This document shows, in pieces, positions 21,980 through 38,135 of a stretch of DNA of 64,000 nt (position 1 is the stretch's first letter; every line of letters starts with the position of its first letter). Under the pieces are notes generated by a model. The model saw nothing but the letters and a program-made list of their open reading frames with translations. It searched no databases and was not told the origin of the DNA. The position numbers and the translations under genes were made by a program. Where the stretch lies: the sequence record NC_023610.1; one strand, given 5' to 3'.

Positions 21980-23950
21980 TTAGCGACCGAAGCCGTAACC
22001 GCCACGAGAGTTGAAGGTGTTACCGTTGTAGTTACCGGAACCGCCGAAACGGTTGTCGAAGTAACCACGACGAACGCTGTCTTGCAGCAGACCTTCAGTC
22101 GGGATGGTCAGGCCAGCTTTATCCACCGCCTGAGTCAGTTTGTACAGCCAGTCAGGGTTAATCTGAACCAGGTACGCATGACCAGTGATGGTGTAGCTGC
22201 CGGTAACGGAAGCGATGATTTCTTCCATTTTCGCCAGACGTGCTTCTTCGCTGATGTTGCGGTTCCAGCACGCGTCATCCCACATGGCAATCGCTTCGAG
22301 GTCGCGGTTCTTCGCCAGACCGAAGTGGGTCATCATGAAGAAACGGTCCAGTTCACGCAGGTCACGGATACGACCTTTAGAATCGGTCCAGTGGCCCAGC
22401 AGGATGATGCGCTCTTCCAGAGCACCGAACGGAGTAGCTTCATCGAGGTAATCTTCGATGACGCCGCCGGTCAGACGGTGTGCCGCTTCCCACAGCTGGA
22501 TACGAGCCTGGCGGTGGTTCGGGTGCTTATCGTCAGCCGCTTCCAGGTACAGACGCTGGGTACGCGTTTGCAGGCCGGATTTTTCGATGTGCAGGAAGAC
22601 GTTCAGAGAATCTTCCTGAACGACCGCTTCGTTCAGCTCAGCCCACTCAACTTCTGATGGGTCAGCTGGAATCGGCGGGTCAAACTCGACCAGCTGCTCA
22701 ACTTCCAGAGCACGTGCATCACGCAGGTCGGCAGAATCGCCAACCGGGCGCAGAGATTTCACCAGGCAGTCTTCACGCATCAGAGCCGATACGGTGGACA
22801 GCCCCAGCAGGTTCATCTCGGTAGTGAAGTTGTTGTTGGACGCAATCTTGGTCAGGTTCAGACCCAGTGCGTAGATGTCCAGCTCATCAACTTCACGACG
22901 ACGTGCACGGCTACCGCCACGACGACGACCGCCATCTTTTGGACCCAGGTAGATGTAGTCGGTGAAACCGTCAATCTGCACCAGGTTAGAGTTACGGTTA
23001 CCTTCCAGGGCGTTTACCTGACCTTTGCGGCCCGCAGGACCGGTAGTGACTTGCAGAGACAGGTCACGACGCAGTGGTTCGCCAAAGACGGTAGAGTCAT
23101 CACCCGGTGCGTAAGTTACGCGACCGCTGACTTCGTAGTTCTCTGGAATGATATCTTCCAGCTTGAACTGGTGGTCACCCTGAGTCAGCTCATCGTACAT
23201 GCTGTACGCTGCGGTGTTAATCAGGTTGGTGATAACTTCATCCACTTCACGCTCGGAGTAACCGAAGGTGACTGGAACGGTTACCGCACCGAAGAGGACA
23301 ACCGGTACATCAGCACCCAGGCCAACGTTTTTCTGCACCTGATTGATGACGGAACCTTTGAAGCCTTCGGTCCACACATCGCTCGGTACCGCAGAGAACA
23401 CGTAACGGCGCTGACCTTCAGTCACTTCCTGCTTAGGCAGCTGCTGGCGACCCATCATGACCGCAGTGATTGCGCCGACGAATTTCACGTCGCCGTAGGT
23501 AAAGGCCGCAGCCAGGACAACTGAGTCCAGCTGGAAACCAGTCAGATGACCCGGAACCGGAATCAGCTGCCACTTAGTTTTGCCACCCATGCTCAGACGG
23601 TTTTTGTTCGCTTCGAGGAACTTGTTACCCGCGTCGATGAATTTACCCATCTCGTCGCCGCCAGCGGCAGACTGAATCAGCGGTTGACCAGGATTGAACA
23701 TGTTCAGGATATCGTTCATTGCAGTTTTCCCTTTATAGGCTTCTGTATTAGTTTCGGTTTGTGGTACATGACGAGCTGCGACAACTTCTTCTTCGTGAGG
23801 AGTTGACGCTTGGGTATTCGGTTGCTGCTGCGAGTGCTTTTTGGCACTCTGGTGTTGGCGATACTGAGCTAACGGGTTAGGCGGGTTTTGGCGTTTACCT
23901 TCACCTTCATCCTTATTACCGTGTTCACTATCACCAGAATTCCAACCCAT
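21980..23950 (-). CDS. chmA: Chimallin, the major phage nuclear shell protein
   Basis: 656 aa directly upstream of nvRNAP beta-prime N. C-terminal TGHAYLVQINPDWL..L..AV..AGL matches the chimallin pattern as I recall it. Strong SD. Confidence 0.85.
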   Translation of the reverse strand: MGWNSGDSEHGNKDEGEGKRQNPPNPLAQYRQHQSAKKHSQQQPNTQASTPHEEEVVAARHVPQTETNTEAYKGKTAMNDILNMFNPGQPLIQSAAGGDEMGKFIDAGNKFLEANKNRLSMGGKTKWQLIPVPGHLTGFQLDSVVLAAAFTYGDVKFVGAITAVMMGRQQLPKQEVTEGQRRYVFSAVPSDVWTEGFKGSVINQVQKNVGLGADVPVVLFGAVTVPVTFGYSEREVDEVITNLINTAAYSMYDELTQGDHQFKLEDIIPENYEVSGRVTYAPGDDSTVFGEPLRRDLSLQVTTGPAGRKGQVNALEGNRNSNLVQIDGFTDYIYLGPKDGGRRRGGSRARRREVDELDIYALGLNLTKIASNNNFTTEMNLLGLSTVSALMREDCLVKSLRPVGDSADLRDARALEVEQLVEFDPPIPADPSEVEWAELNEAVVQEDSLNVFLHIEKSGLQTRTQRLYLEAADDKHPNHRQARIQLWEAAHRLTGGVIEDYLDEATPFGALEERIILLGHWTDSKGRIRDLRELDRFFMMTHFGLAKNRDLEAIAMWDDACWNRNISEEARLAKMEEIIASVTGSYTITGHAYLVQINPDWLYKLTQAVDKAGLTIPTEGLLQDSVRRGYFDNRFGGSGNYNGNTFNSRGGYGFGR

Positions 23951-31674: not shown

Positions 31675-31960
31675 GGAAAGAAAATAAAAGAAGATATTCT
31701 GGTTACCTCACCGCTCGCGCTCGTAAGCCGATTGTGTGGGTAACCAGGTATCTTGTCGTGCTTGTGGTCCCGTCCAGAGTCAGTCGCTGCAATAGCGCTT
31801 CGTCATCGCGGTTAACGCGAGTTCCCCGCTGGGAACTTAATGGCCGCAATTAAGCAGCTTGGGTTTTTTGGGGTACCTCTGCACGCAGGTGTTGACCAGA
31901 CACCCCGCAGCTATTCCATCCAGAGAACAACTACGTTAGCTTGCATATTTGTACATATAA
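31675..31960 (-). ncRNA. Candidate structured non-coding RNA or long structured 3' region of phuZ
   Basis: Several hairpins, a terminal ~15-bp stem (31691-31707/31739-31754) followed by a U-rich tract, and TATG motifs at 31944 and 31954. Confidence 0.35.
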
Positions 31961-31984
31961 TAGACTAAACCGCTAACGGTTCTC

Positions 31985-32953
31985 TTACGAAGAGAATTTA
32001 AAGCCGTCGTCGTTCAGACCAGCGGTATCCAGCACGTCAACGCTCTCACGTTGCTTACGGGCACGAGCCAGTGCTTCGAAGTTGTCCACGGTCTTTTGCA
32101 GGCCTGCAATCACACCCGCCAGGTCCTGGGTATAGATGATGAAGTGCAGGTCGTTCTTTTCAGCTACGCGGCGATACCCTTCACAACCGTATTCAGACGG
32201 CAGAGATGGGTTGGCACCGTCCACTGAACCGTGCAGGCTGGCAACCGCCAGTGGGTATGGCAGCGACTTCGCATGGCTGTAGTCTGGGGTGATGTCCAGC
32301 AGCGCAACGCCTGGGCCGTTTTTCACGTTGAAGAAACGGTGTACGTCAGAGCTGTCGAGACGGTCGTGTTCGCCGGAGTACAGGTCAAGGATAGACAGCA
32401 AGCCCAGGACCATCTGTGCATCAACGTCGTTGTCCTGTGCCACGGAACCGTTATCTTCGTAGAAGACAACCGCAGTGGATTCGTTCTTCTTCGCGATACC
32501 GTTCAGGGTCTGCCAGGTATCCATGGTGTTTTTGGTGGTCTGGGAGTTTTCCGCAGAACCTACCACAAAGAACACGGTTGGTTTTTTCTGGCGCAGCAGT
32601 TCTTCAGCCAGTTTCGGTCCAATAACAGAACCGGAACCGCCACCGCCTGAGAACACCAGAATGTTCAGGTCACCGGCAGGGTGGCTGACCAGCACGTCTG
32701 GGATGGCACGGGCGATAGGGTGATAGTTGGTGCTGCGCTCTTTGCCAGAACCGTCGGTTGCACCCGGGATGATATAGCAGTCTTCATCACGGAAGTTGGA
32801 ACCGCCGATGGCGCTAAAGTTTGAACGAGAGGTATCGACGAAGTGGGCTTTCACTTCGGCCAGACCCGCGAGGTTTTTCTTCATCAGCAGGCTGACAATG
32901 TTGATACCAGTGCCGCCACAGCCATAGATGGAAACGGTGTTACGTGAGCTCAT
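31985..32953 (-). CDS. phuZ: PhuZ phage tubulin
   Basis: YGCGGTGINI, tubulin signature SGGGGSGSVIG, and PhuZ-type C-terminal tail NDDGFKF. Confidence 0.95.
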   Translation of the reverse strand: MSSRNTVSIYGCGGTGINIVSLLMKKNLAGLAEVKAHFVDTSRSNFSAIGGSNFRDEDCYIIPGATDGSGKERSTNYHPIARAIPDVLVSHPAGDLNILVFSGGGGSGSVIGPKLAEELLRQKKPTVFFVVGSAENSQTTKNTMDTWQTLNGIAKKNESTAVVFYEDNGSVAQDNDVDAQMVLGLLSILDLYSGEHDRLDSSDVHRFFNVKNGPGVALLDITPDYSHAKSLPYPLAVASLHGSVDGANPSLPSEYGCEGYRRVAEKNDLHFIIYTQDLAGVIAGLQKTVDNFEALARARKQRESVDVLDTAGLNDDGFKFSS

Positions 32954-33055
32954 TGTTTTGGGTCCTTAACACAAAGGTTATTCAAAAAGGTTACCAACGT
33001 TATACTTCTACACAGTTACTGTGACATACGTACATTTTGAAACGGAGCGAGCCCA

Positions 33056-33886
33056 ATGAGCGTCATCACGAAACTCATCGCTGATGTCAAAGCGGAAATC
33101 CCCCGTCAAGTCCTGGAAATTGCTTTCCTGGGTGACATGGGTCGAGAGAACCGTTTTGCCAGCAACCTCGACTTTCAGATTCGCCAGAAGGTCATTGACG
33201 CCCGTGTCTGGGTGGACTTAAGCCTTCAAGGTGCCGAAGAAGTCAACATCCCTCTGGCGCGTTGCGAAGTTGAGCAAGACGACCAGTACAAGACCATCAT
33301 ACGCATCCCAAAAGAATTGACGGGCGGGCGTATCATCACGCAGGTATTAGCGTTCAACTATACCATCAACGGCGTGACCGGCATGACCAACAACGGGTAT
33401 AACAACAACTCGTTTAACATGTCCAACGAAGGAAACTCCCCGCAAATGAACTCCGCGGCAAAGATTCTTCGTTCGGCATCCCCGGCACCTATCCTGGGGT
33501 CAGCGGCTACCCGTATCGTCGGGGAGAACGTAATTCTCCTGAACGATTACATGGGGTCGGTGAAGCAGGGTAACATGACCGTGCGTGTGGGACATGACCC
33601 GGAACTGAATACCTTCAAACCAACCAGTGTAAAACAGCTGTCGAAGTTTGTCGTGTACGCAGTGAAGGCGTATATCTACACCAACAGTGTGATTACGCTG
33701 GATATGGGTCATCTGTACGGTGGTAGTGAAATCGGCCGTATCCGTGATATCATTGACGGGTATGCGGATTGTAATGAACTGTACAACACCTACTACGATG
33801 AAGAAATGATTGCGGTCAACTTCATGAACGATGACACGCGTCACGGGAACTTCCTGCGCACCCTCATTGGCGGTGCTGCTTCTTGA
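33056..33886 (+). CDS. Conserved phiKZ-like protein, probably virion structural
   Basis: 276-aa plus-strand ORF divergent from phuZ; function not recognised. Confidence 0.55.
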   Translation: MSVITKLIADVKAEIPRQVLEIAFLGDMGRENRFASNLDFQIRQKVIDARVWVDLSLQGAEEVNIPLARCEVEQDDQYKTIIRIPKELTGGRIITQVLAFNYTINGVTGMTNNGYNNNSFNMSNEGNSPQMNSAAKILRSASPAPILGSAATRIVGENVILLNDYMGSVKQGNMTVRVGHDPELNTFKPTSVKQLSKFVVYAVKAYIYTNSVITLDMGHLYGGSEIGRIRDIIDGYADCNELYNTYYDEEMIAVNFMNDDTRHGNFLRTLIGGAAS

Positions 33887-33887
33887 C

Positions 33888-33923
33888 AAAAAAAAAGAAG
33901 GGGCGCAATGCCCCTTCTTTTAT
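33888..33923. terminator. Bidirectional intrinsic terminator
   Basis: AAGAAGGGGC/GCCCCTTCTT stem with A and T tracts. Confidence 0.85.
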
Positions 33924-34471
33924 TCTGTTTTGAACTTCTCGGTGATATACAACTTGATACGTTGAATAACCGCGTCAACATATTCACGATGGATACTGGC
34001 GTCTTCCAGTCCGGCGCGGACGGAGACGACGATGTTATTAATCAACCAACCGTTTTCTAACGCGGTGTCGACGAACTCTACCCAGTTAACGCGACTGTTG
34101 CGCTCCAGGATAATTTGCCCGAAGATAACGTCGAACGGCAACCCGTGCGTAGCCTTCATTTCGAAAACCAGTTTTCCAGACACCATGGGGTGTTGCTTTT
34201 CGAATGCCAGGTGTTTACGGAGAGCCAGTTGGTAGTGCATCTCCTTATCCAGCTTCTTATCGGGGTACAGACGCGCCCAGTCCTTCGTTACGGCGTCGAA
34301 CGCCACCTGGGGTACCAATGGTCCATTAGAGGAGCGCGGTTGGTTGAGTAGCGCTTCATTGATTGGATTAGGGGTACTGGTCTGGCGGCGAGCATCGCTG
34401 GTGAGGGGTGGTGCCCACTCGGTGTAGCTGGCTACTGTGCGCTGAAAGCCTTTCGGTTTATTCTTCTTCAT
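33920..34471 (-). CDS. Protein containing a stand-alone alanyl-tRNA synthetase tRNA-recognition-domain fragment
   Basis: SGKLVFEMKATHGLPFDV...ERNSRVNWVEF aligns with AlaRS [17 protein letters not shown]...[11 protein letters not shown]; no catalytic motifs. Confidence 0.65.
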   Translation of the reverse strand: MKKNKPKGFQRTVASYTEWAPPLTSDARRQTSTPNPINEALLNQPRSSNGPLVPQVAFDAVTKDWARLYPDKKLDKEMHYQLALRKHLAFEKQHPMVSGKLVFEMKATHGLPFDVIFGQIILERNSRVNWVEFVDTALENGWLINNIVVSVRAGLEDASIHREYVDAVIQRIKLYITEKFKTE

Positions 34472-34787
34472 TACCCATCACCTCCGGTTCTACTCCTTCC
34501 GGTAAATCGCACGGCTCTAAGTCAGCCGGGTTAATGCCGAAGACCTGCTTGTCGAAATCGAAAGGACGGACATCGAAGTTATACTTCCTGAGGATGGTCA
34601 CCGTGATGGTCCCGTCTTCCGACAGCGAGTGCAACATCACGCGTTGACCGGTCGTCTTCAGGCGGTACAATTCATCGCCGACCAGGTTATATTTCTCCGC
34701 GATGTCCTGAATAACTTGTGGTCGACCGGTAATCCATTCGTACCAACCCTTCTTCTGTTCTTCTTCCCAAATTAGCCACTTCGCCAT
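34458..34787 (-). CDS. Hypothetical phage protein
   Basis: ATG34787 with SD GGAG, 109 aa. Confidence 0.7.
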   Translation of the reverse strand: MAKWLIWEEEQKKGWYEWITGRPQVIQDIAEKYNLVGDELYRLKTTGQRVMLHSLSEDGTITVTILRKYNFDVRPFDFDKQVFGINPADLEPCDLPEGVEPEVMGNEEE

Positions 34788-34800
34788 TTTACTTACTCCC

Positions 34801-34834
34801 AAAATAAAAAATAGAGAAGGGACCGAAGTCCCTT
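34801..34834 (-). terminator. Intrinsic terminator (cUUCGg loop)
   Basis: AAGGGAC-TTCG-GTCCCTT plus U tract. Confidence 0.75.
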
Positions 34835-34842
34835 GCTCGAGG

Positions 34843-35199
34843 TTAGTGCGTGACGCGAGAGATTGTTAACCCGCCACGTTTGGATTTCGTCAGGTCGTAG
34901 TTCACTTGGGTGTACTTTTCCATCCCGGTAGCTTTAACCTGGGTCTTACCTTTCTTAGACTCCATGGTGACACTGAAGTCGAGGTGCATGGTTTCCGCCA
35001 CGTTCATCAGGTAGTTCAGCGAGAACGTGTGGTAGCGCCCATTACGGATAGCGCAGATAGCGTAATACTGGATACCGAGAGATGCGGCGATATCACGCAT
35101 GGTAGCCTCTTGCGCTAACTTGTCGAGCAAGTAGCTGAGGCGAACACCGAAAAAGTTACGGGCTTCTACAAGAGCTTGATTCTTAATACGTTTTGACAT
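34843..35199 (-). CDS. XRE-family (HigA-like) HTH regulator
   Basis: IAASLGIQYYAICAIRNGRYHTFSLNYLMNVA matches the XRE/HigA pattern. Confidence 0.7.
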   Translation of the reverse strand: MSKRIKNQALVEARNFFGVRLSYLLDKLAQEATMRDIAASLGIQYYAICAIRNGRYHTFSLNYLMNVAETMHLDFSVTMESKKGKTQVKATGMEKYTQVNYDLTKSKRGGLTISRVTH

Positions 35200-35211
35200 T
35201 AGTTCGGTCCT

Positions 35212-35700
35212 TTAAATAAGAGGTTGAACGAGGGTAGCGTTATAGCCTTTCTCAGTAGGAAGGCGATTTTGGTCATCTGCCAGAATCAACTGGACAAGTC
35301 CGTGAGTCGGCAGACAAACTTTCTGGTTGACGGCAAAGTAGGCTTTCTCTTTGATGCTCTCTGGCGTCAGGGTGCGTAACATACAGCGGCGAAGGCTACT
35401 GCGGTTATGGTTGTCGCTACGGCTGTCCACCACCTTGAACGTGAACGGAACGTCCAGCTCGAAGGGTGCGCCATTTACCAGTGCATCAATGAAGTCTTTC
35501 AGATACCGACTGGACTGCGATAATGCACTGGCTCCCGTAAGGACAACCTCGGGGAGTTTGAGTGTGGTGAGTCCCACGGTGTAGATAAAGTTATTCGCCC
35601 CGTTCTTCGGGTCACGGACTTCAATCGGAACCCAGCCTCTTTCTGCGACGGCACTGCGAACGTTAGAATAGAGCTGGTCCAGTTCCTTGCGTGTACTCAT
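35212..35700 (-). CDS. DUF4262-like protein
   Basis: GW....V...F.YTVGL...LPEVVL.G pattern. Confidence 0.65.
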   Translation of the reverse strand: MSTRKELDQLYSNVRSAVAERGWVPIEVRDPKNGANNFIYTVGLTTLKLPEVVLTGASALSQSSRYLKDFIDALVNGAPFELDVPFTFKVVDSRSDNHNRSSLRRCMLRTLTPESIKEKAYFAVNQKVCLPTHGLVQLILADDQNRLPTEKGYNATLVQPLI

Positions 35701-35735
35701 GAAAACCTCAGTAGGGAGGGAAGCCCCTCCCGACG

Positions 35736-36203
35736 TTATGCCGCGATGTTGCGGAAGATAGATTGCGCAAACCCAAACACGCGTTCCGGGTCAGTCCCGG
35801 TGGCGTTGTGTTCTTGCAGCGCCTGGCGGAAGTAGTCGCTCAGCTTACCGCTGCGACTGATGATGGGACGGTCGGAGAAGGCAAGCCATTCTTCGTCGTC
35901 AATGGAAACAACGGTTGGGGAACCCCAGACGATGGCGTCAAAGGTCAGACCGTAGTTGTTCTTCAGGTCATCACGGATGACTTCAGCGTAATGGCTGATG
36001 CGATGAATTTTACCTGGGCTGTTACGGGTTAATTGAAAAACCTCCAGACCGGCGTCGGTGAGGACAACCGCGGAGTAAGGCATGTGGCGAGCGTTGTGGC
36101 TCATGCGAAGGAGAACACTGCGTTTCTCATCAGTACCAATGACGGAGATTTCGCGCAGCTTCCCTTCTGATAGGCGAATAGTGACTGTCATTAACGAGGA
36201 CAT
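35736..36203 (-). CDS. Hypothetical protein
   Basis: 155 aa; start at 36203 or 36191. Confidence 0.65.
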   Translation of the reverse strand: MSSLMTVTIRLSEGKLREISVIGTDEKRSVLLRMSHNARHMPYSAVVLTDAGLEVFQLTRNSPGKIHRISHYAEVIRDDLKNNYGLTFDAIVWGSPTVVSIDDEEWLAFSDRPIISRSGKLSDYFRQALQEHNATGTDPERVFGFAQSIFRNIAA

Positions 36204-36625
36204 GGTTTCTTACCCTTACAGTTTGGTTGGCAGTATTTACCAAACCCTGTTATGGTTGTTAAGTTAACAGGGAAATCAGAGATAACAGGGTTAACCCGAC
36301 CGCAACCTTGACATTTAGCCAGCCGAATATTGTCGGGGACAAAGACCATCAGTGGATTACTTTTAAATTCTTCACGGATGAGGCGGTCGTTGGTTATGGC
36401 GGTGGTTTCCCTACAGGTGGTGCAGTACTTGTAAATTTTGTCGCGGAACGTGAACTCCGCAATGTCGAGCTGTTCTTTACAGCACGGACATTCTTTCTCG
36501 GTGAGGACCTCCTTCACTTTGGTGACCCGAGGTTTCTTAACGTCCTTGTTGGCAGTACCGGCTTTGATAGGGGTACTGTGAAAGAACTGGTTCGGGTCAT
36601 ACTGGTTGCCGTTACGGTCTAACAT
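36191..36625 (-). CDS. Double zinc-finger protein
   Basis: CPCC...F...CTTC and CQGC...F...CQPNC; ATG36625 with SD AAGGA. Confidence 0.6.
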   Translation of the reverse strand: MLDRNGNQYDPNQFFHSTPIKAGTANKDVKKPRVTKVKEVLTEKECPCCKEQLDIAEFTFRDKIYKYCTTCRETTAITNDRLIREEFKSNPLMVFVPDNIRLAKCQGCGRVNPVISDFPVNLTTITGFGKYCQPNCKGKKPCPR

Positions 36626-36673
36626 TTGATATTCCTTATTAGCGGTCAATGCCGCGATGGTAAATGGTGTTGG

Positions 36674-37066
36674 TTACAGCTTGATAACTTTGTCAACGAG
36701 CATGTAGGATGGTTCGTCGTCAAAATACCCTTCGCTACTTGCAATGCGGTAGTGTTTCCGTGCTTCACGTGACGTGGCCACTTGACCGGTTTTGCGATGG
36801 AACTCCTGCTGACGTTGTATGTTTGCCAGATAGTCGACTTGGTGTTTGTCGAGTGCCTGAATGGTTTCTTCTACATCGGAGACCGGGAGACTAAAAGCGT
36901 GTGCAATCATCTCATCGGTGAAGTTGTTCTCACGCATCTGGTGAAAGCTTTCGTACGGGGCGTATTGTAAACCAGCAACCGCCCGACTACGTTCTGAGTC
37001 GATACGGTCCGACTCCATCAGAATGTCCAAACACTCACGACGTTCGCTTTCGAATTGTTCGCTCAT
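36674..37066 (-). CDS. HTH-like protein, tandem paralog A
   Basis: NFTDEMIAHAFSLPVSDVEE; aligns with the adjacent ORF. Confidence 0.65.
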   Translation of the reverse strand: MSEQFESERRECLDILMESDRIDSERSRAVAGLQYAPYESFHQMRENNFTDEMIAHAFSLPVSDVEETIQALDKHQVDYLANIQRQQEFHRKTGQVATSREARKHYRIASSEGYFDDEPSYMLVDKVIKL

Positions 37067-37524
37067 GGTAGTCTCCCGAAACCATAGTCACTTTGTGGAG
37101 GGAAGTCGGGGTACAAGCTGTACATCGACTCATCAAAAGGTTTGTCGCTAAGGACGTAATCCCCCGCCCCGGCGTACGAGTATTCGCGCTCAACCCGGTA
37201 GAAGTGTCGGGTGTTTTCGGAATGGACCGACTTACCGTGGGTCTGTTCGAACGCCGCTGATTTCTCGTTCCACTCGCGCATTTCACCACGAAACTTCTTC
37301 ATGGCAGCGAGAACATTCTCAATGTCATCGTGCGACATGGTGAATGCCTGAGAAACCATCTCGACCGTCATGTAGTTATCGAGCATCTTCTGGATTTCGT
37401 AAATCGGGTCACCTTCATACGGTGCTACTGCATTCTGATACTCCCGGTCTATCTTTATCCATTCGTTTAATAGCTCAACATATTCCCGTCGGGTCATTTC
37501 CCAACGGCGCTGGAAGATATCCAT
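37063..37524 (-). CDS. HTH-like protein, tandem paralog B
   Basis: YMTVEMVSQAFTMSHDDIEN; SD AGGAGG. Confidence 0.65.
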   Translation of the reverse strand: MDIFQRRWEMTRREYVELLNEWIKIDREYQNAVAPYEGDPIYEIQKMLDNYMTVEMVSQAFTMSHDDIENVLAAMKKFRGEMREWNEKSAAFEQTHGKSVHSENTRHFYRVEREYSYAGAGDYVLSDKPFDESMYSLYPDFPPQSDYGFGRLP

Positions 37525-37532
37525 GTTACCTC

Positions 37533-38135
37533 CTAGTGACAGTTAACGTGGTTGTACTCTTCGGCCATCAGCTGCTGAATACGTTGTTTGATGCCGTCGC
37601 TCTCAACGCCCGGGGGGTTGATGACATCGACAAACGTGATGCCGTGCTGACGCAAGAGTTCCATGATACCGGACAGCCCTTTCTCTTCCGCCCCTTCGAT
37701 ATCAATCTTCGCAAACGCTCCGCCGTAGATTTCACCCGGTGGAACATAGTGGTCAATTTCAATCTTCAGTTCGTTCATCGGAATGGAGTGGCGGAACTTG
37801 TGGTGGATGTTCCCGGCAAAGGCAAGGACCTGACGGAAGCCGTGTTCGTCAATCACCACTTCGGTTTCAATACATTCGCTGTTGATGGAACCGGCAGTTC
37901 GAGGGAGACGGAACTTGGTGGCGGCCTCGTACAGTTCTTTATCGGTTTCCCCACGGTCATCAAAGGTGACAGTACGGCGAACGCGGTTGGTAACACGCAT
38001 TCCTTTATCGGTAGTCGAGTTTGTCTCGGCCTGAATCATGTACTGGGCATTACCGCGTTTACTGTTCAACATGGCTTTGGACCCGGCACCCAACATGACA
38101 AACAAACATAACTCTGCTTCTTTGGCAGTACTCAT
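37533..38135 (-). CDS. CYTH/triphosphate-tunnel-metalloenzyme-like protein
   Basis: N-terminal EAEL (ExE), RVRR, YEAATK, HKFR, EIDHY and KIDIE in CYTH order. Confidence 0.6.
   Translation of the reverse strand: MSTAKEAELCLFVMLGAGSKAMLNSKRGNAQYMIQAETNSTTDKGMRVTNRVRRTVTFDDRGETDKELYEAATKFRLPRTAGSINSECIETEVVIDEHGFRQVLAFAGNIHHKFRHSIPMNELKIEIDHYVPPGEIYGGAFAKIDIEGAEEKGLSGIMELLRQHGITFVDVINPPGVESDGIKQRIQQLMAEEYNHVNCH

Follow-up and report, generated by a model that had tools for sequence, protein, structure and literature searches.

A small protein of Erwinia phage PhiEaH1 and other jumbo phages is homologous to a segment of the alanyl-tRNA synthetase tRNA-recognition domain

Does a jumbo phage carry a free-standing piece of alanyl-tRNA synthetase (AlaRS), and what might such a piece do? 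The question is raised by a 64,000-nt stretch of DNA (NC_023610.1; hereafter the window) from Erwinia phage PhiEaH1, whose 218-kb genome encodes both chimallin and PhuZ and with whose numbering that of the window coincides. A preliminary description noted that the open reading frame at 33920-34471 resembles AlaRS and lacks a class II catalytic domain, and proposed that its product mimics the synthetase in binding tRNA-Ala or tmRNA. The reading frame runs from ATG to stop on the minus strand, with ends exactly at 33920 and 34471, and corresponds in both the ORF list and RefSeq to CF95_gp036 (YP_009010089.1; 183 aa plus stop), labelled hypothetical and referred to here as gp036. The peptide on which the resemblance had been based is residues 97-140 of this protein, and the Escherichia coli string given for comparison is a correct rendering of alaS residues 390-432 (NC_000913.3).

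The locus has the features of a genuine gene: a strong Shine-Dalgarno sequence, a terminator, an operon position, low dN/dS and a confident AF2 fold. The Shine-Dalgarno sequence, read directly from the DNA, is GGAGGT at 34480..34485 on the minus strand, 8 nt 5' of the gp036 ATG. The preceding gene on the same strand, gp037 (34458..34802; 114 aa, no family match), overlaps the start of gp036 by 14 nt at its 3' end, suggesting translational coupling. A terminator scan identified a bidirectional intrinsic hairpin (33893..33921) where gp035 and gp036 converge, with a 12-13 bp stem and T-runs on either strand, overlapping the gp036 stop codon. Comparison with vB_Ea277G over residues 96-177 yielded a dN/dS of 0.03, which shows that gp036 is a real phage gene under purifying selection, and composition analysis did not indicate a recent foreign origin. 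Four sequencing runs labelled as metatranscriptomic were discarded as evidence of expression: they contain contigs of 23-175 kb from a 96-98% identical relative, with flat depth, and show the presence of the phage and not its transcription.

Some huge phages encode aminoacyl-tRNA synthetases, and gp036 could in principle be the decaying remnant of a once complete phage AlaRS gene. The strong purifying selection and the gene's own Shine-Dalgarno sequence and terminator speak against decay, as does the flanking DNA, where gp035 and gp037-gp041 were scanned and found to belong to unrelated families or to have no match, with no similarity to AlaRS. The same domain boundaries, moreover, recur in 119 diverged clusters of homologues, none longer than 271 aa, which leaves the remnant explanation barely credible. 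The aminoacyl-tRNA synthetase complement of jumbo phages was found to be only patchy in a survey of these viruses (PMC7824862).

Taken alone, gp036 gives a borderline signal for AlaRS. Pairwise BLASTP against E. coli AlaRS aligned 43 residues, 13 of them identical, with an E-value of 0.005 that applies to this single comparison; the Pfam AlaRS profile PF01411 matched residues 85-136 weakly (profile positions 370-420 of 552; E 0.076), its 12 bits falling short of the 30.3-bit cut-off, and no NCBIfam model matched. Profiles built from the protein family give significant matches. The six best matches of the full family alignment (A2, 124 members) among PDB sequences were all AlaRS chains (E 3.3e-4 to 9.2e-4), and hhalign placed the same profile on residues 389-426 of E. 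coli AlaRS (probability 85.6%, E 5.6e-6), while a trimmed alignment (A3) matched 78 gammaproteobacterial AlaRS segments over 40 columns (probability 89.7%, E 1.9e-6). PF01411 was matched by 105 of the 124 members at profile positions of about 370-424, with a best E-value of 6.5e-8, and TIGR00344 (alaS) matched members at positions 376-420, its scores for relatives (13-28 bits) lying below the 457-bit cut-off; the Pfam hits of the family likewise stay under the curated threshold. In VIA-align, model residues 94-145 superpose on residues 386-435 of E. coli AlaRS with Z 4.5 and an rmsd of 3.6 A at 24% identity, in a register that agrees with the sequence alignment.

By chance, a generic helix-turn-helix whose helix cap reads G-hydrophobic-P-x-D might resemble AlaRS, and several results would fit this: gp036 by itself falls below every curated threshold, hhalign with the shallow clade profile gave a probability of 8%, and Foldseek E-values exceeded 1. 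Yet three independent profile tests chose the same 40 AlaRS residues as the best or only match, and the agreement of register and the recurrent Pfam positions across the family are hard to reconcile with coincidence, which we consider very improbable. Homology of gp036 residues 96-134 (34070..34186, minus strand) to a segment of the AlaRS tRNA-recognition domain, matching E. coli residues 389-426, is thus confirmed; this core comprises a helix-loop-helix and the beginning of a third helix, and two to three helices at the start of the conserved gp036 domain are shown to descend from the AlaRS tRNA-recognition domain.

The relationship is local, extending over about 40-50 residues of a tRNA-recognition domain of roughly 190, so that gp036 is a free-standing protein with a segment homologous to that domain, and not the whole domain. 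It has no class II catalytic core, the region of motifs 1-3 at PF01411 positions of about 1-250, as had been noted at the outset. There are likewise no Pfam matches to the editing domain (tRNA_SAD) or to C-Ala (DHHA1), nor to any other Pfam or NCBIfam domain, within its 183 aa, and no significant alignment upstream of AlaRS residue 386, where the Mid1 part bearing Asn303, the residue that contacts U70 in the major groove and rejects G3:C70, would have to lie. These absences show that gp036 is not a synthetase. The retained segment falls within E. coli AlaRS 369-442, the region required for tRNA charging (PMC11392972).

The protein can be divided into three parts. Residues 1-54 (34310..34471, minus strand) form a basic N-terminal tail predicted to be disordered (AF2 pLDDT of about 50-60), and vary among close homologues by both indels and substitutions (alignment A1). 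Residues 55-95 (34187..34309, minus strand; pLDDT 85-96) then form two helices that are confined to the PhiEaH1 clade and invariant across its six close homologues. These may continue an AlaRS-like topology, since AlaRS rows covered gp036 residues 56-157 in a shape search of AFDB Swiss-Prot and AlaRS entries came out on top in the ESM Atlas, but neither result is significant (E 1-5 and TM 0.35, respectively) and hhalign with the shallow clade profile did not support AlaRS homology upstream of residue 94 (residues 55-93). A TFIIF-alpha match to the N-terminal part (E 0.038) and structural matches to histone-like helix pairs (Z 3-4) were judged spurious. The third part, residues 96-181 (33929..34186, minus strand), is a five-helix domain of ~85 aa found across the 119 representatives. 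Modelled with the 124-sequence alignment, its residues 96-179 reach pLDDT values above 94 (above 90 for 125 residues of the protein), superseding a poor model built from six sequences (pLDDT 55). When the whole model was searched with Foldseek (PDB, AFDB clusters, AFDB Swiss-Prot) and with VIA-align in wide mode, no significant global match emerged, the best rows being designed helical proteins (Z 6-7); AlaRS is recovered as a local match only.

The phylogenetic distribution was a further suggested check. A profile from the gp036 clade recovered 119 representative clusters of 63-271 aa, aligned at positions of about 103-185 and sharing 20-41% identity with gp036. GenBank matches comprise 23 phage records, all of jumbo phages (218-349 kb), and structural matches in BFVD include a Dickeya JA13 protein (TM 0.95 by target) and a Moabite protein (E 2e-6 and 7.5e-6). 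The ~85-aa domain is thereby shown to define a family of small, helical proteins, seen in no sequenced phages but jumbo phages. The conserved columns G99, F103, G110, P112, W130, F133 and A137 are all present in gp036, which belongs to a second, minority group of 43 members: the main-group motif A-R-x-N-G-W-W-D-F-Q-T, spanning helix 3 and the next turn, is not kept and reads A-L-E-N-G-W-L-I-N-N-I in gp036. The orthologous group phrog_22967 matches gp036 weakly (E 0.0066, 17.7 bits) and 44 of the 124 members with E-values down to 7.8e-11, and the ten longest members contain no informative extra domain. Homologues in Serratia phages Moabite and Totoro and in Xanthomonas phage XaC1 are labelled 'alanyl-tRNA synthetase' or 'alanine-tRNA ligase' in GenBank. 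Proteins of 90-130 aa cannot be synthetases, and these names are over-annotations of the domain match. They also qualify the notion that the protein is undescribed: annotators had already used AlaRS names, although our literature search found no paper describing this family or a free-standing piece of the AlaRS Mid2 type.

The shared segment includes the loop with which AlaRS reads its tRNA. In the synthetase, a loop bearing Tyr399, Asp400 and Gly403 touches the G3:U70 base pair through the minor groove; the 2'-OH of U70 is bound by the Tyr399 and Asp400 backbone together with the Gly403 NH, and Asp400 is the positive reader of G3, through its 2-amino group (PMC6055181). Replacement of this residue in D400A or D400N nearly abolishes charging by E. 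coli AlaRS, the kcat/Km of D400A being 0.042 of the wild-type value (PMC6055181). By hhalign register and column counts, the corresponding motif in gp036 is K-A-T-H-G-L-P-F-D at residues 106-114 (34130..34156, minus strand), equivalent to AlaRS Y399-D400-T401-Y402-G403-F404-P405-V406-D407. The framework residues T108, H109, G110, L111, P112 and D114 are kept, while Tyr399 is replaced by Lys106 and Asp400 by Ala107. Across the family, just two columns are invariant, among them Gly110, the equivalent of Gly403; Pro112 occurs in 120 of 124 members, Thr108 in 97 and His109 in 92, and the Tyr399 position is occupied by Lys or Arg in 88. The Asp400 column holds Ala in 64 members (52%), including gp036 and all five of its close homologues, Asp in 32 and Glu in 8, and a few members keep an almost AlaRS-like L-Y-D-T-H-G.

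These residues bear directly on the proposal that gp036 is a G3:U70-specific mimic, which would bind or shield tRNA-Ala or tmRNA, block trans-translation, or decoy a defence aimed at AlaRS. Its appeal is that the homologous AlaRS loop is the exact minor-groove reader of G3:U70 and that an acidic residue survives in part of the family. No tRNA or tmRNA gene is present anywhere in the PhiEaH1 genome, and Rfam returned no match within the window; any RNA target of gp036 must accordingly be a host RNA. In gp036 itself, however, the reading residue is the very alanine that cripples the E. coli enzyme, Asn303 has no counterpart, most of the tRNA-recognition domain is missing, the PADLOC defence library contains no match to gp036, and no such mechanism was found in the literature. 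Because gp036 lacks the residue that reads G3:U70, the proposed tRNA-Ala/tmRNA role is unproven, and as judged from the sequence we consider a G3:U70-specific mimic decidedly unlikely; what stands of the original claim is that the homologous loop is the AlaRS G3:U70 reader.

Charge and genomic context bring a different possibility into view. The net charge of gp036 is +5, composed of about +7 in residues 1-98 and -2 in residues 99-179; across the family the domain has a mean charge of -2.2 and is negative in 78% of members. Since the domain is so often acidic and many members consist of the bare domain with no basic tail, tight RNA binding by the domain on its own is doubtful. Searching IMG/VR with the trimmed alignment identified 35 loci, of which the 33 well-matched ones have no tRNA gene within 8 kb, and neighbouring genes vary, with no conserved partner gene and no link to translation genes across the family loci. 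In ~12 chimallin-encoding IMG/VR loci the family gene lies directly 3' of the DNA polymerase gene and adjoins the chimallin gene, and in PhiEaH1 gp036 is two genes away from PhuZ. The AlaRS-derived helices could have been exapted purely as a scaffold that binds protein and not RNA, its putative partners being host AlaRS, with gp036 as a modifier or a dominant-negative stand-in for the mobile Mid2, or a component of the phage replication machinery or nucleus. The acidic domain, the loss of Asp400 in most members, the missing tRNA-gene link and the placement beside replication and nucleus genes are all in keeping with this, as are the variable orientation of Mid2 within AlaRS (PMC6055181) and the position of the most family-specific block (W130, F133, A137 and N-G-W) outside the AlaRS-like loop. 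Against it, no partner gene is conserved family-wide, the small genes upstream in PhiEaH1 and in IMG/VR locus L005 are unrelated, and conservation still peaks in the loop through which AlaRS contacts RNA. We regard a protein-binding scaffold as less likely than not, though only slightly behind the explanation preferred below.

The explanation we tentatively prefer, at somewhat below even probability, is that gp036 is an AlaRS subdomain exapted to bind an RNA helix, host tRNA acceptor stems for example, with no specificity for the G:U pair. The retained loop would still dock on an A-form RNA helix, at its minor-groove and sugar-phosphate face, and the basic disordered N-terminal tail would add non-specific affinity. 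In a phage with no tRNA of its own, host tRNA acceptor stems would be the most plausible target, recognized independently of G3:U70. The protein might work by itself or serve a larger complex as its RNA-docking subunit, with a likely accessory role in taking over or protecting host translation or the tRNA pool.

Observations on RNA docking can be read in both directions. The strongest conservation falls on the RNA-contacting loop known from AlaRS. The T-H-G-L-P-x-D conservation could serve a turn and helix cap only; Asp400 is lost in most members of a family with a mostly acidic domain and no link to tRNA or translation genes, whole-model folds do not significantly single out AlaRS, and the main-group motif is not kept in gp036.

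A broader and unlikely version of RNA docking holds that jumbo phages carry a dedicated family of AlaRS-derived free-standing acceptor-stem readers that would act in the cytoplasm, binding host tRNAs or tmRNA to reprogramme or protect the translation apparatus. Such proteins might protect acceptor ends against defence toxins directed at tRNA, or disturb the charging of tRNA-Ala or tmRNA; members that keep the aspartate would remain selective for G3:U70, and a broader range of targets would be expected of those with Ala, gp036 included.

Among known systems, the closest is the Mid2 part of AlaRS itself (E. coli residues of about 386-441, PF01411 positions of about 370-424), which has the same helix-loop-helix(-helix) as gp036 and shares with it the motif G-x3-F-x-L-x-(D/A)-T-(Y/H)-G-(F/L)-P-x-D. 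Unlike AlaRS, gp036 lacks the catalytic core, Mid1/Asn303, the editing domain and C-Ala, and its two further helices at residues 144-181 have no detectable AlaRS counterpart. The jumbo-phage relatives (Moabite gp181, XaC1_496, Totoro and the Dickeya JA-phage proteins), partly covered by phrog_22967, are small and free-standing like gp036 and contain the same ~85-aa domain at 30-39% identity, but lack its clade-specific 95-residue N-terminal extension. KTSC provides a jumbo-phage precedent for a piece of a synthetase surviving as a small separate protein, although the gp036 piece has a different domain of origin. Phage T4 Vs is a small protein that binds and modifies host ValRS; Vs is not known to derive from a synthetase, and as a small phage protein aimed at host aminoacylation it is a precedent for the protein-binding scaffold only.

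At the practical level, several GenBank records misname phage proteins of 90-130 aa as 'alanyl-tRNA synthetase'. Fragments of aminoacyl-tRNA synthetases that stand alone often perform RNA-related tasks in their own right, and with Asp400 kept by about one family member in four and replaced by Ala in gp036, these proteins form a natural mutant series for G:U recognition by an isolated subdomain. A family built on the G3:U70-reading piece of AlaRS would open a new way into how large phages manage the tRNA pool of the host, trans-translation or tRNA-targeting defences.

The analyzed sequence is 100% identical to Erwinia phage PhiEaH1 (KF623294 / NC_023610, 218,339 bp, genus Iapetusvirus), and window coordinates equal PhiEaH1 genome coordinates. 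PhiEaH1 is most likely a nucleus-forming jumbo phage, because it encodes the hallmark proteins of such phages, a chimallin homologue (21980-23950, minus strand; PF25677, E 2.5e-14) and a PhuZ tubulin, named tubulin PhuZ in RefSeq (31985-32953, minus strand). CF95_gp036 (33920-34471, minus strand; hereafter gp036), annotated as a hypothetical protein of 183 aa, closes a long minus-strand series of small genes. A GGAGGT Shine-Dalgarno sequence sits 8 nt 5' of its ATG, its first 14 nt are shared with the 3' end of gp037, and its end lies at a bidirectional terminator hairpin (33893-33921) in common with the convergent gene gp035 (33056-33886, plus strand), which encodes a full-length DUF7484 protein (E 1.5e-92). 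Between residues 96 and 177, gp036 differs from its counterpart in the 96%-identical phage vB_Ea277G by 16 synonymous and 2 non-synonymous substitutions (dN/dS 0.03). It is a genuine gene under selection, and the idea that it represents a decaying synthetase remnant is essentially excluded, its probability being close to nil. The minus-strand genes upstream include gp038 (34843-35199; HTH_37 domain, slightly under threshold), gp039 (35212-35700; DUF4262 protein) and the tandem paralogues gp042 and gp043 (36674-37066 and 37063-37524; 28% identity over 123 aa, E 5e-14). In the interval between gp038 and gp037, a terminator-like hairpin (34817-34834, minus strand) combines a GC-rich 7-bp stem with a T-rich tail, and it could turn gp037-gp036 into a partly separate two-gene unit.

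The preliminary description had aligned a gp036 peptide, here located at residues 97-140, with a stretch of E. coli alanyl-tRNA synthetase (AlaRS) that proved correct (residues 390-432). Pairwise BLASTP with E. coli AlaRS yields 13 identities in 43 positions (E 0.005, valid for a single comparison), and PF01411 matches gp036 alone at E 0.076 (12 bits; cut-off 30.3). Judged from this one sequence the similarity is borderline; the collection of a family was the decisive step. A word-indexed protein search returned five close homologues, and a profile run against 1.84 billion cluster representatives identified 119 proteins at E <= 1e-3, 63-271 aa long and matching only the ~85 C-terminal residues of gp036. 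The six top matches of the 124-sequence family profile (A2) among PDB sequences are all AlaRS chains (E 3.3e-4 to 9.2e-4), including A. aeolicus 1riq at 365-414 and E. coli 3hxu at 387-424. With hhalign, A2 pairs gp036 96-134 with E. coli AlaRS 389-426 (probability 85.6%, E 5.6e-6), and a trimmed 25-sequence profile (A3) aligns over 40 columns with 78 aligned gammaproteobacterial AlaRS segments (probability 89.7%, E 1.9e-6). PF01411 is touched by 105 of the 124 members (best E 6.5e-8), at positions ~369-424 in the per-member hits inspected, and family members also match positions 376-420 of TIGR00344 alaS. Family profile, hhalign and PF01411 hits bear out the AlaRS-like segment, and chance similarity is essentially excluded as a very improbable explanation.

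AlphaFold2 with a deep alignment confidently predicts an all-helical gp036 (pLDDT >= 90 at 125 residues), with helices at 55-68, 76-93, 99-109, 113-123, 130-139, 144-157 and 162-181. The VIA-align superposition of model residues 94-145 with E. coli AlaRS 386-435 scores Z 4.5 at 3.6 A rmsd and 24% identity and agrees in register with the sequence alignment. The ESM Atlas shape search ranks AlaRS entries first and the AFDB Swiss-Prot list contains them repeatedly, in both cases with non-significant scores, and whole-model fold searches with gp036 do not single out AlaRS. Since the segment superposes in the sequence register while whole-model searches are unspecific, the resemblance is real but local, spanning ~40-50 residues and two to three helices.

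In E. coli AlaRS, where tRNA charging needs residues 369-442 (as noted in PMC11392972), Asp400 forms a hydrogen bond to the 2-amino group of G3, the 2'-OH of U70 is bound by the Tyr399/Asp400 main chain and the Gly403 NH, D400A and D400N lower kcat/Km ~25-fold, and G3:C70 rejection is mediated by Asn303 in a separate subdomain (PMC6055181). In the hhalign register, gp036 residues K106, A107, T108, H109, G110, L111, P112 and D114 pair with AlaRS Y399, D400, T401, Y402, G403, F404, P405 and D407, and the loop framework therein is preserved. G110 occupies one of only two invariant columns in the family, with P112 found in 120/124 members, T108 in 97/124 and H109 in 92/124. Whereas AlaRS reads G3 via Asp400, gp036 has Ala107 at this position, and the G3-reading side chain is likewise lost in all five close homologues. 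Across the 124 members this column holds Ala (64), Asp (32), Thr (8), Glu (8), Ser (5), Asn (5), Val (1) and Gln (1), and 88 members have Lys or Arg at the Tyr399 position. Two motif groups can be distinguished: Group I (81 members) carries A-R-x-N-G-W-W-D-F-Q-T, mostly with Ala at the Asp400 position, and in Group II (43 members, gp036 among them) 24 proteins have Asp or Glu there, a few members showing L-Y-D-T-H-G nearly as in AlaRS. The AlaRS catalytic core is absent from gp036, as had been noted, and Mid1, the editing domain and C-Ala have no counterparts; gp036 is firmly not a synthetase. The earlier interpretation as a stand-alone tRNA-recognition fragment mimicking the G3-U70 reader holds for the domain piece (A2 hhalign E 5.6e-6) and fails at the G3:U70-reading residue; G3:U70-specific action on tRNA-Ala or tmRNA is improbable for gp036 and possible for Asp-retaining family members.

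A tblastn search of GenBank phages retrieved 23 records, every one a jumbo phage with a genome of 218-349 kb; their hosts are Erwinia, Dickeya, Serratia, Klebsiella or Xanthomonas. Three homologues among them bear the label 'alanyl-tRNA synthetase' or 'alanine-tRNA ligase', which in the record of phage Moabite rests on an InterPro IPR018162 match and HHpred at 88-89%; the AlaRS-like protein receives no discussion in the Moabite genome paper. Earlier annotators had flagged, and over-named, these homologues. IMG/VR contributes 35 loci, of which 16 lie on contigs of 100-312 kb, and viral sequences make up 88-100% of the nearest ESM Atlas clusters. No informative fused domain was found in longer members.

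Close relatives differ around gp036. vB_Ea277G and 96-98% identical contigs from four public runs carry ~800 extra bases right after the gp036 homologue (window 33930-33942), encoding a 260-aa ORF (L124:1435-2217) that overlaps the homologue's stop codon and has no Pfam match. Near their C-terminus all five close homologues read ...K-K-F-E-V..., and PhiEaH1 finishes with ...E-K-F-K-T-E. Given this extra ORF and the shared alternative C-terminus, PhiEaH1 looks like a form from which the 260-aa gene and the last gp036 codons were deleted. The same contigs also carry ~614 extra bases in the PhuZ to gp035 interval (window 33015-33062). Public runs X3-X6, labelled metatranscriptomic RNA-Seq, yielded PhiEaH1-like phage contigs of 23-175 kb with even depth (compared over window 31900-37800). 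The pattern resembles DNA of the phage genome, or coverage of its full length, rather than transcripts of single genes.

ARAGORN detected no tRNA or tmRNA genes in the whole 218-kb PhiEaH1 genome, and no Rfam family reached gathering score in the window. No tRNA gene occurs within 8 kb in any of 33 well-matched IMG/VR loci; XaC1, with three tRNA genes upstream, is an exception. Neighboring-ORF clustering revealed no partner conserved throughout the family, and PADLOC returned no match. In ~12 chimallin-encoding loci the gene immediately follows a divergent family-B DNA polymerase, neighboring an oppositely oriented 361-377-aa gene and the chimallin gene. The conserved order in a group of IMG/VR and Logan contigs of chimallin-encoding phages (L005, L018, L020, L027, L029, L030, L039, L040) is PhuZ, ~ten small genes, divergent family-B DNA polymerase, (small ORF), AlaRS-like gene, 361-377-aa gene and chimallin; PhiEaH1 keeps the block, but its AlaRS-like gene lies upstream of PhuZ, on its other side. 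The conserved domain is mildly acidic (mean net charge -2.2; 78% of members negative), and a basic disordered N-terminal tail brings whole gp036 to +5. An acidic surface, the Asp400 loss, missing tRNA gene linkage and the DNA-polymerase/chimallin neighborhood all favor the main alternative, only slightly less probable than the RNA-binding reading, in which the fold is re-used for protein-protein contacts, for instance with host AlaRS or phage replication/nucleus proteins.

Free-standing synthetase-derived domains are already known in AlaX and Trbp111. A KTSC domain protein has been noted in jumbo phages (PMC7824862). gp036 is like all three in being a free-standing synthetase-derived domain, and no description of a free-standing AlaRS acceptor-stem-reader piece was found in the literature searched. 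gp036 firmly belongs to an uncharacterized family of jumbo-phage proteins whose basis is a piece exapted from the AlaRS tRNA-recognition domain. Because the best-conserved part of this family is the loop that makes backbone RNA contacts in AlaRS, and because Tyr399 is replaced by Lys or Arg in most members, we tentatively propose that the retained loop may bind an A-form RNA helix without G3:U70 specificity, assisted in gp036 by the basic tail, with host tRNA acceptor stems as the most plausible target.
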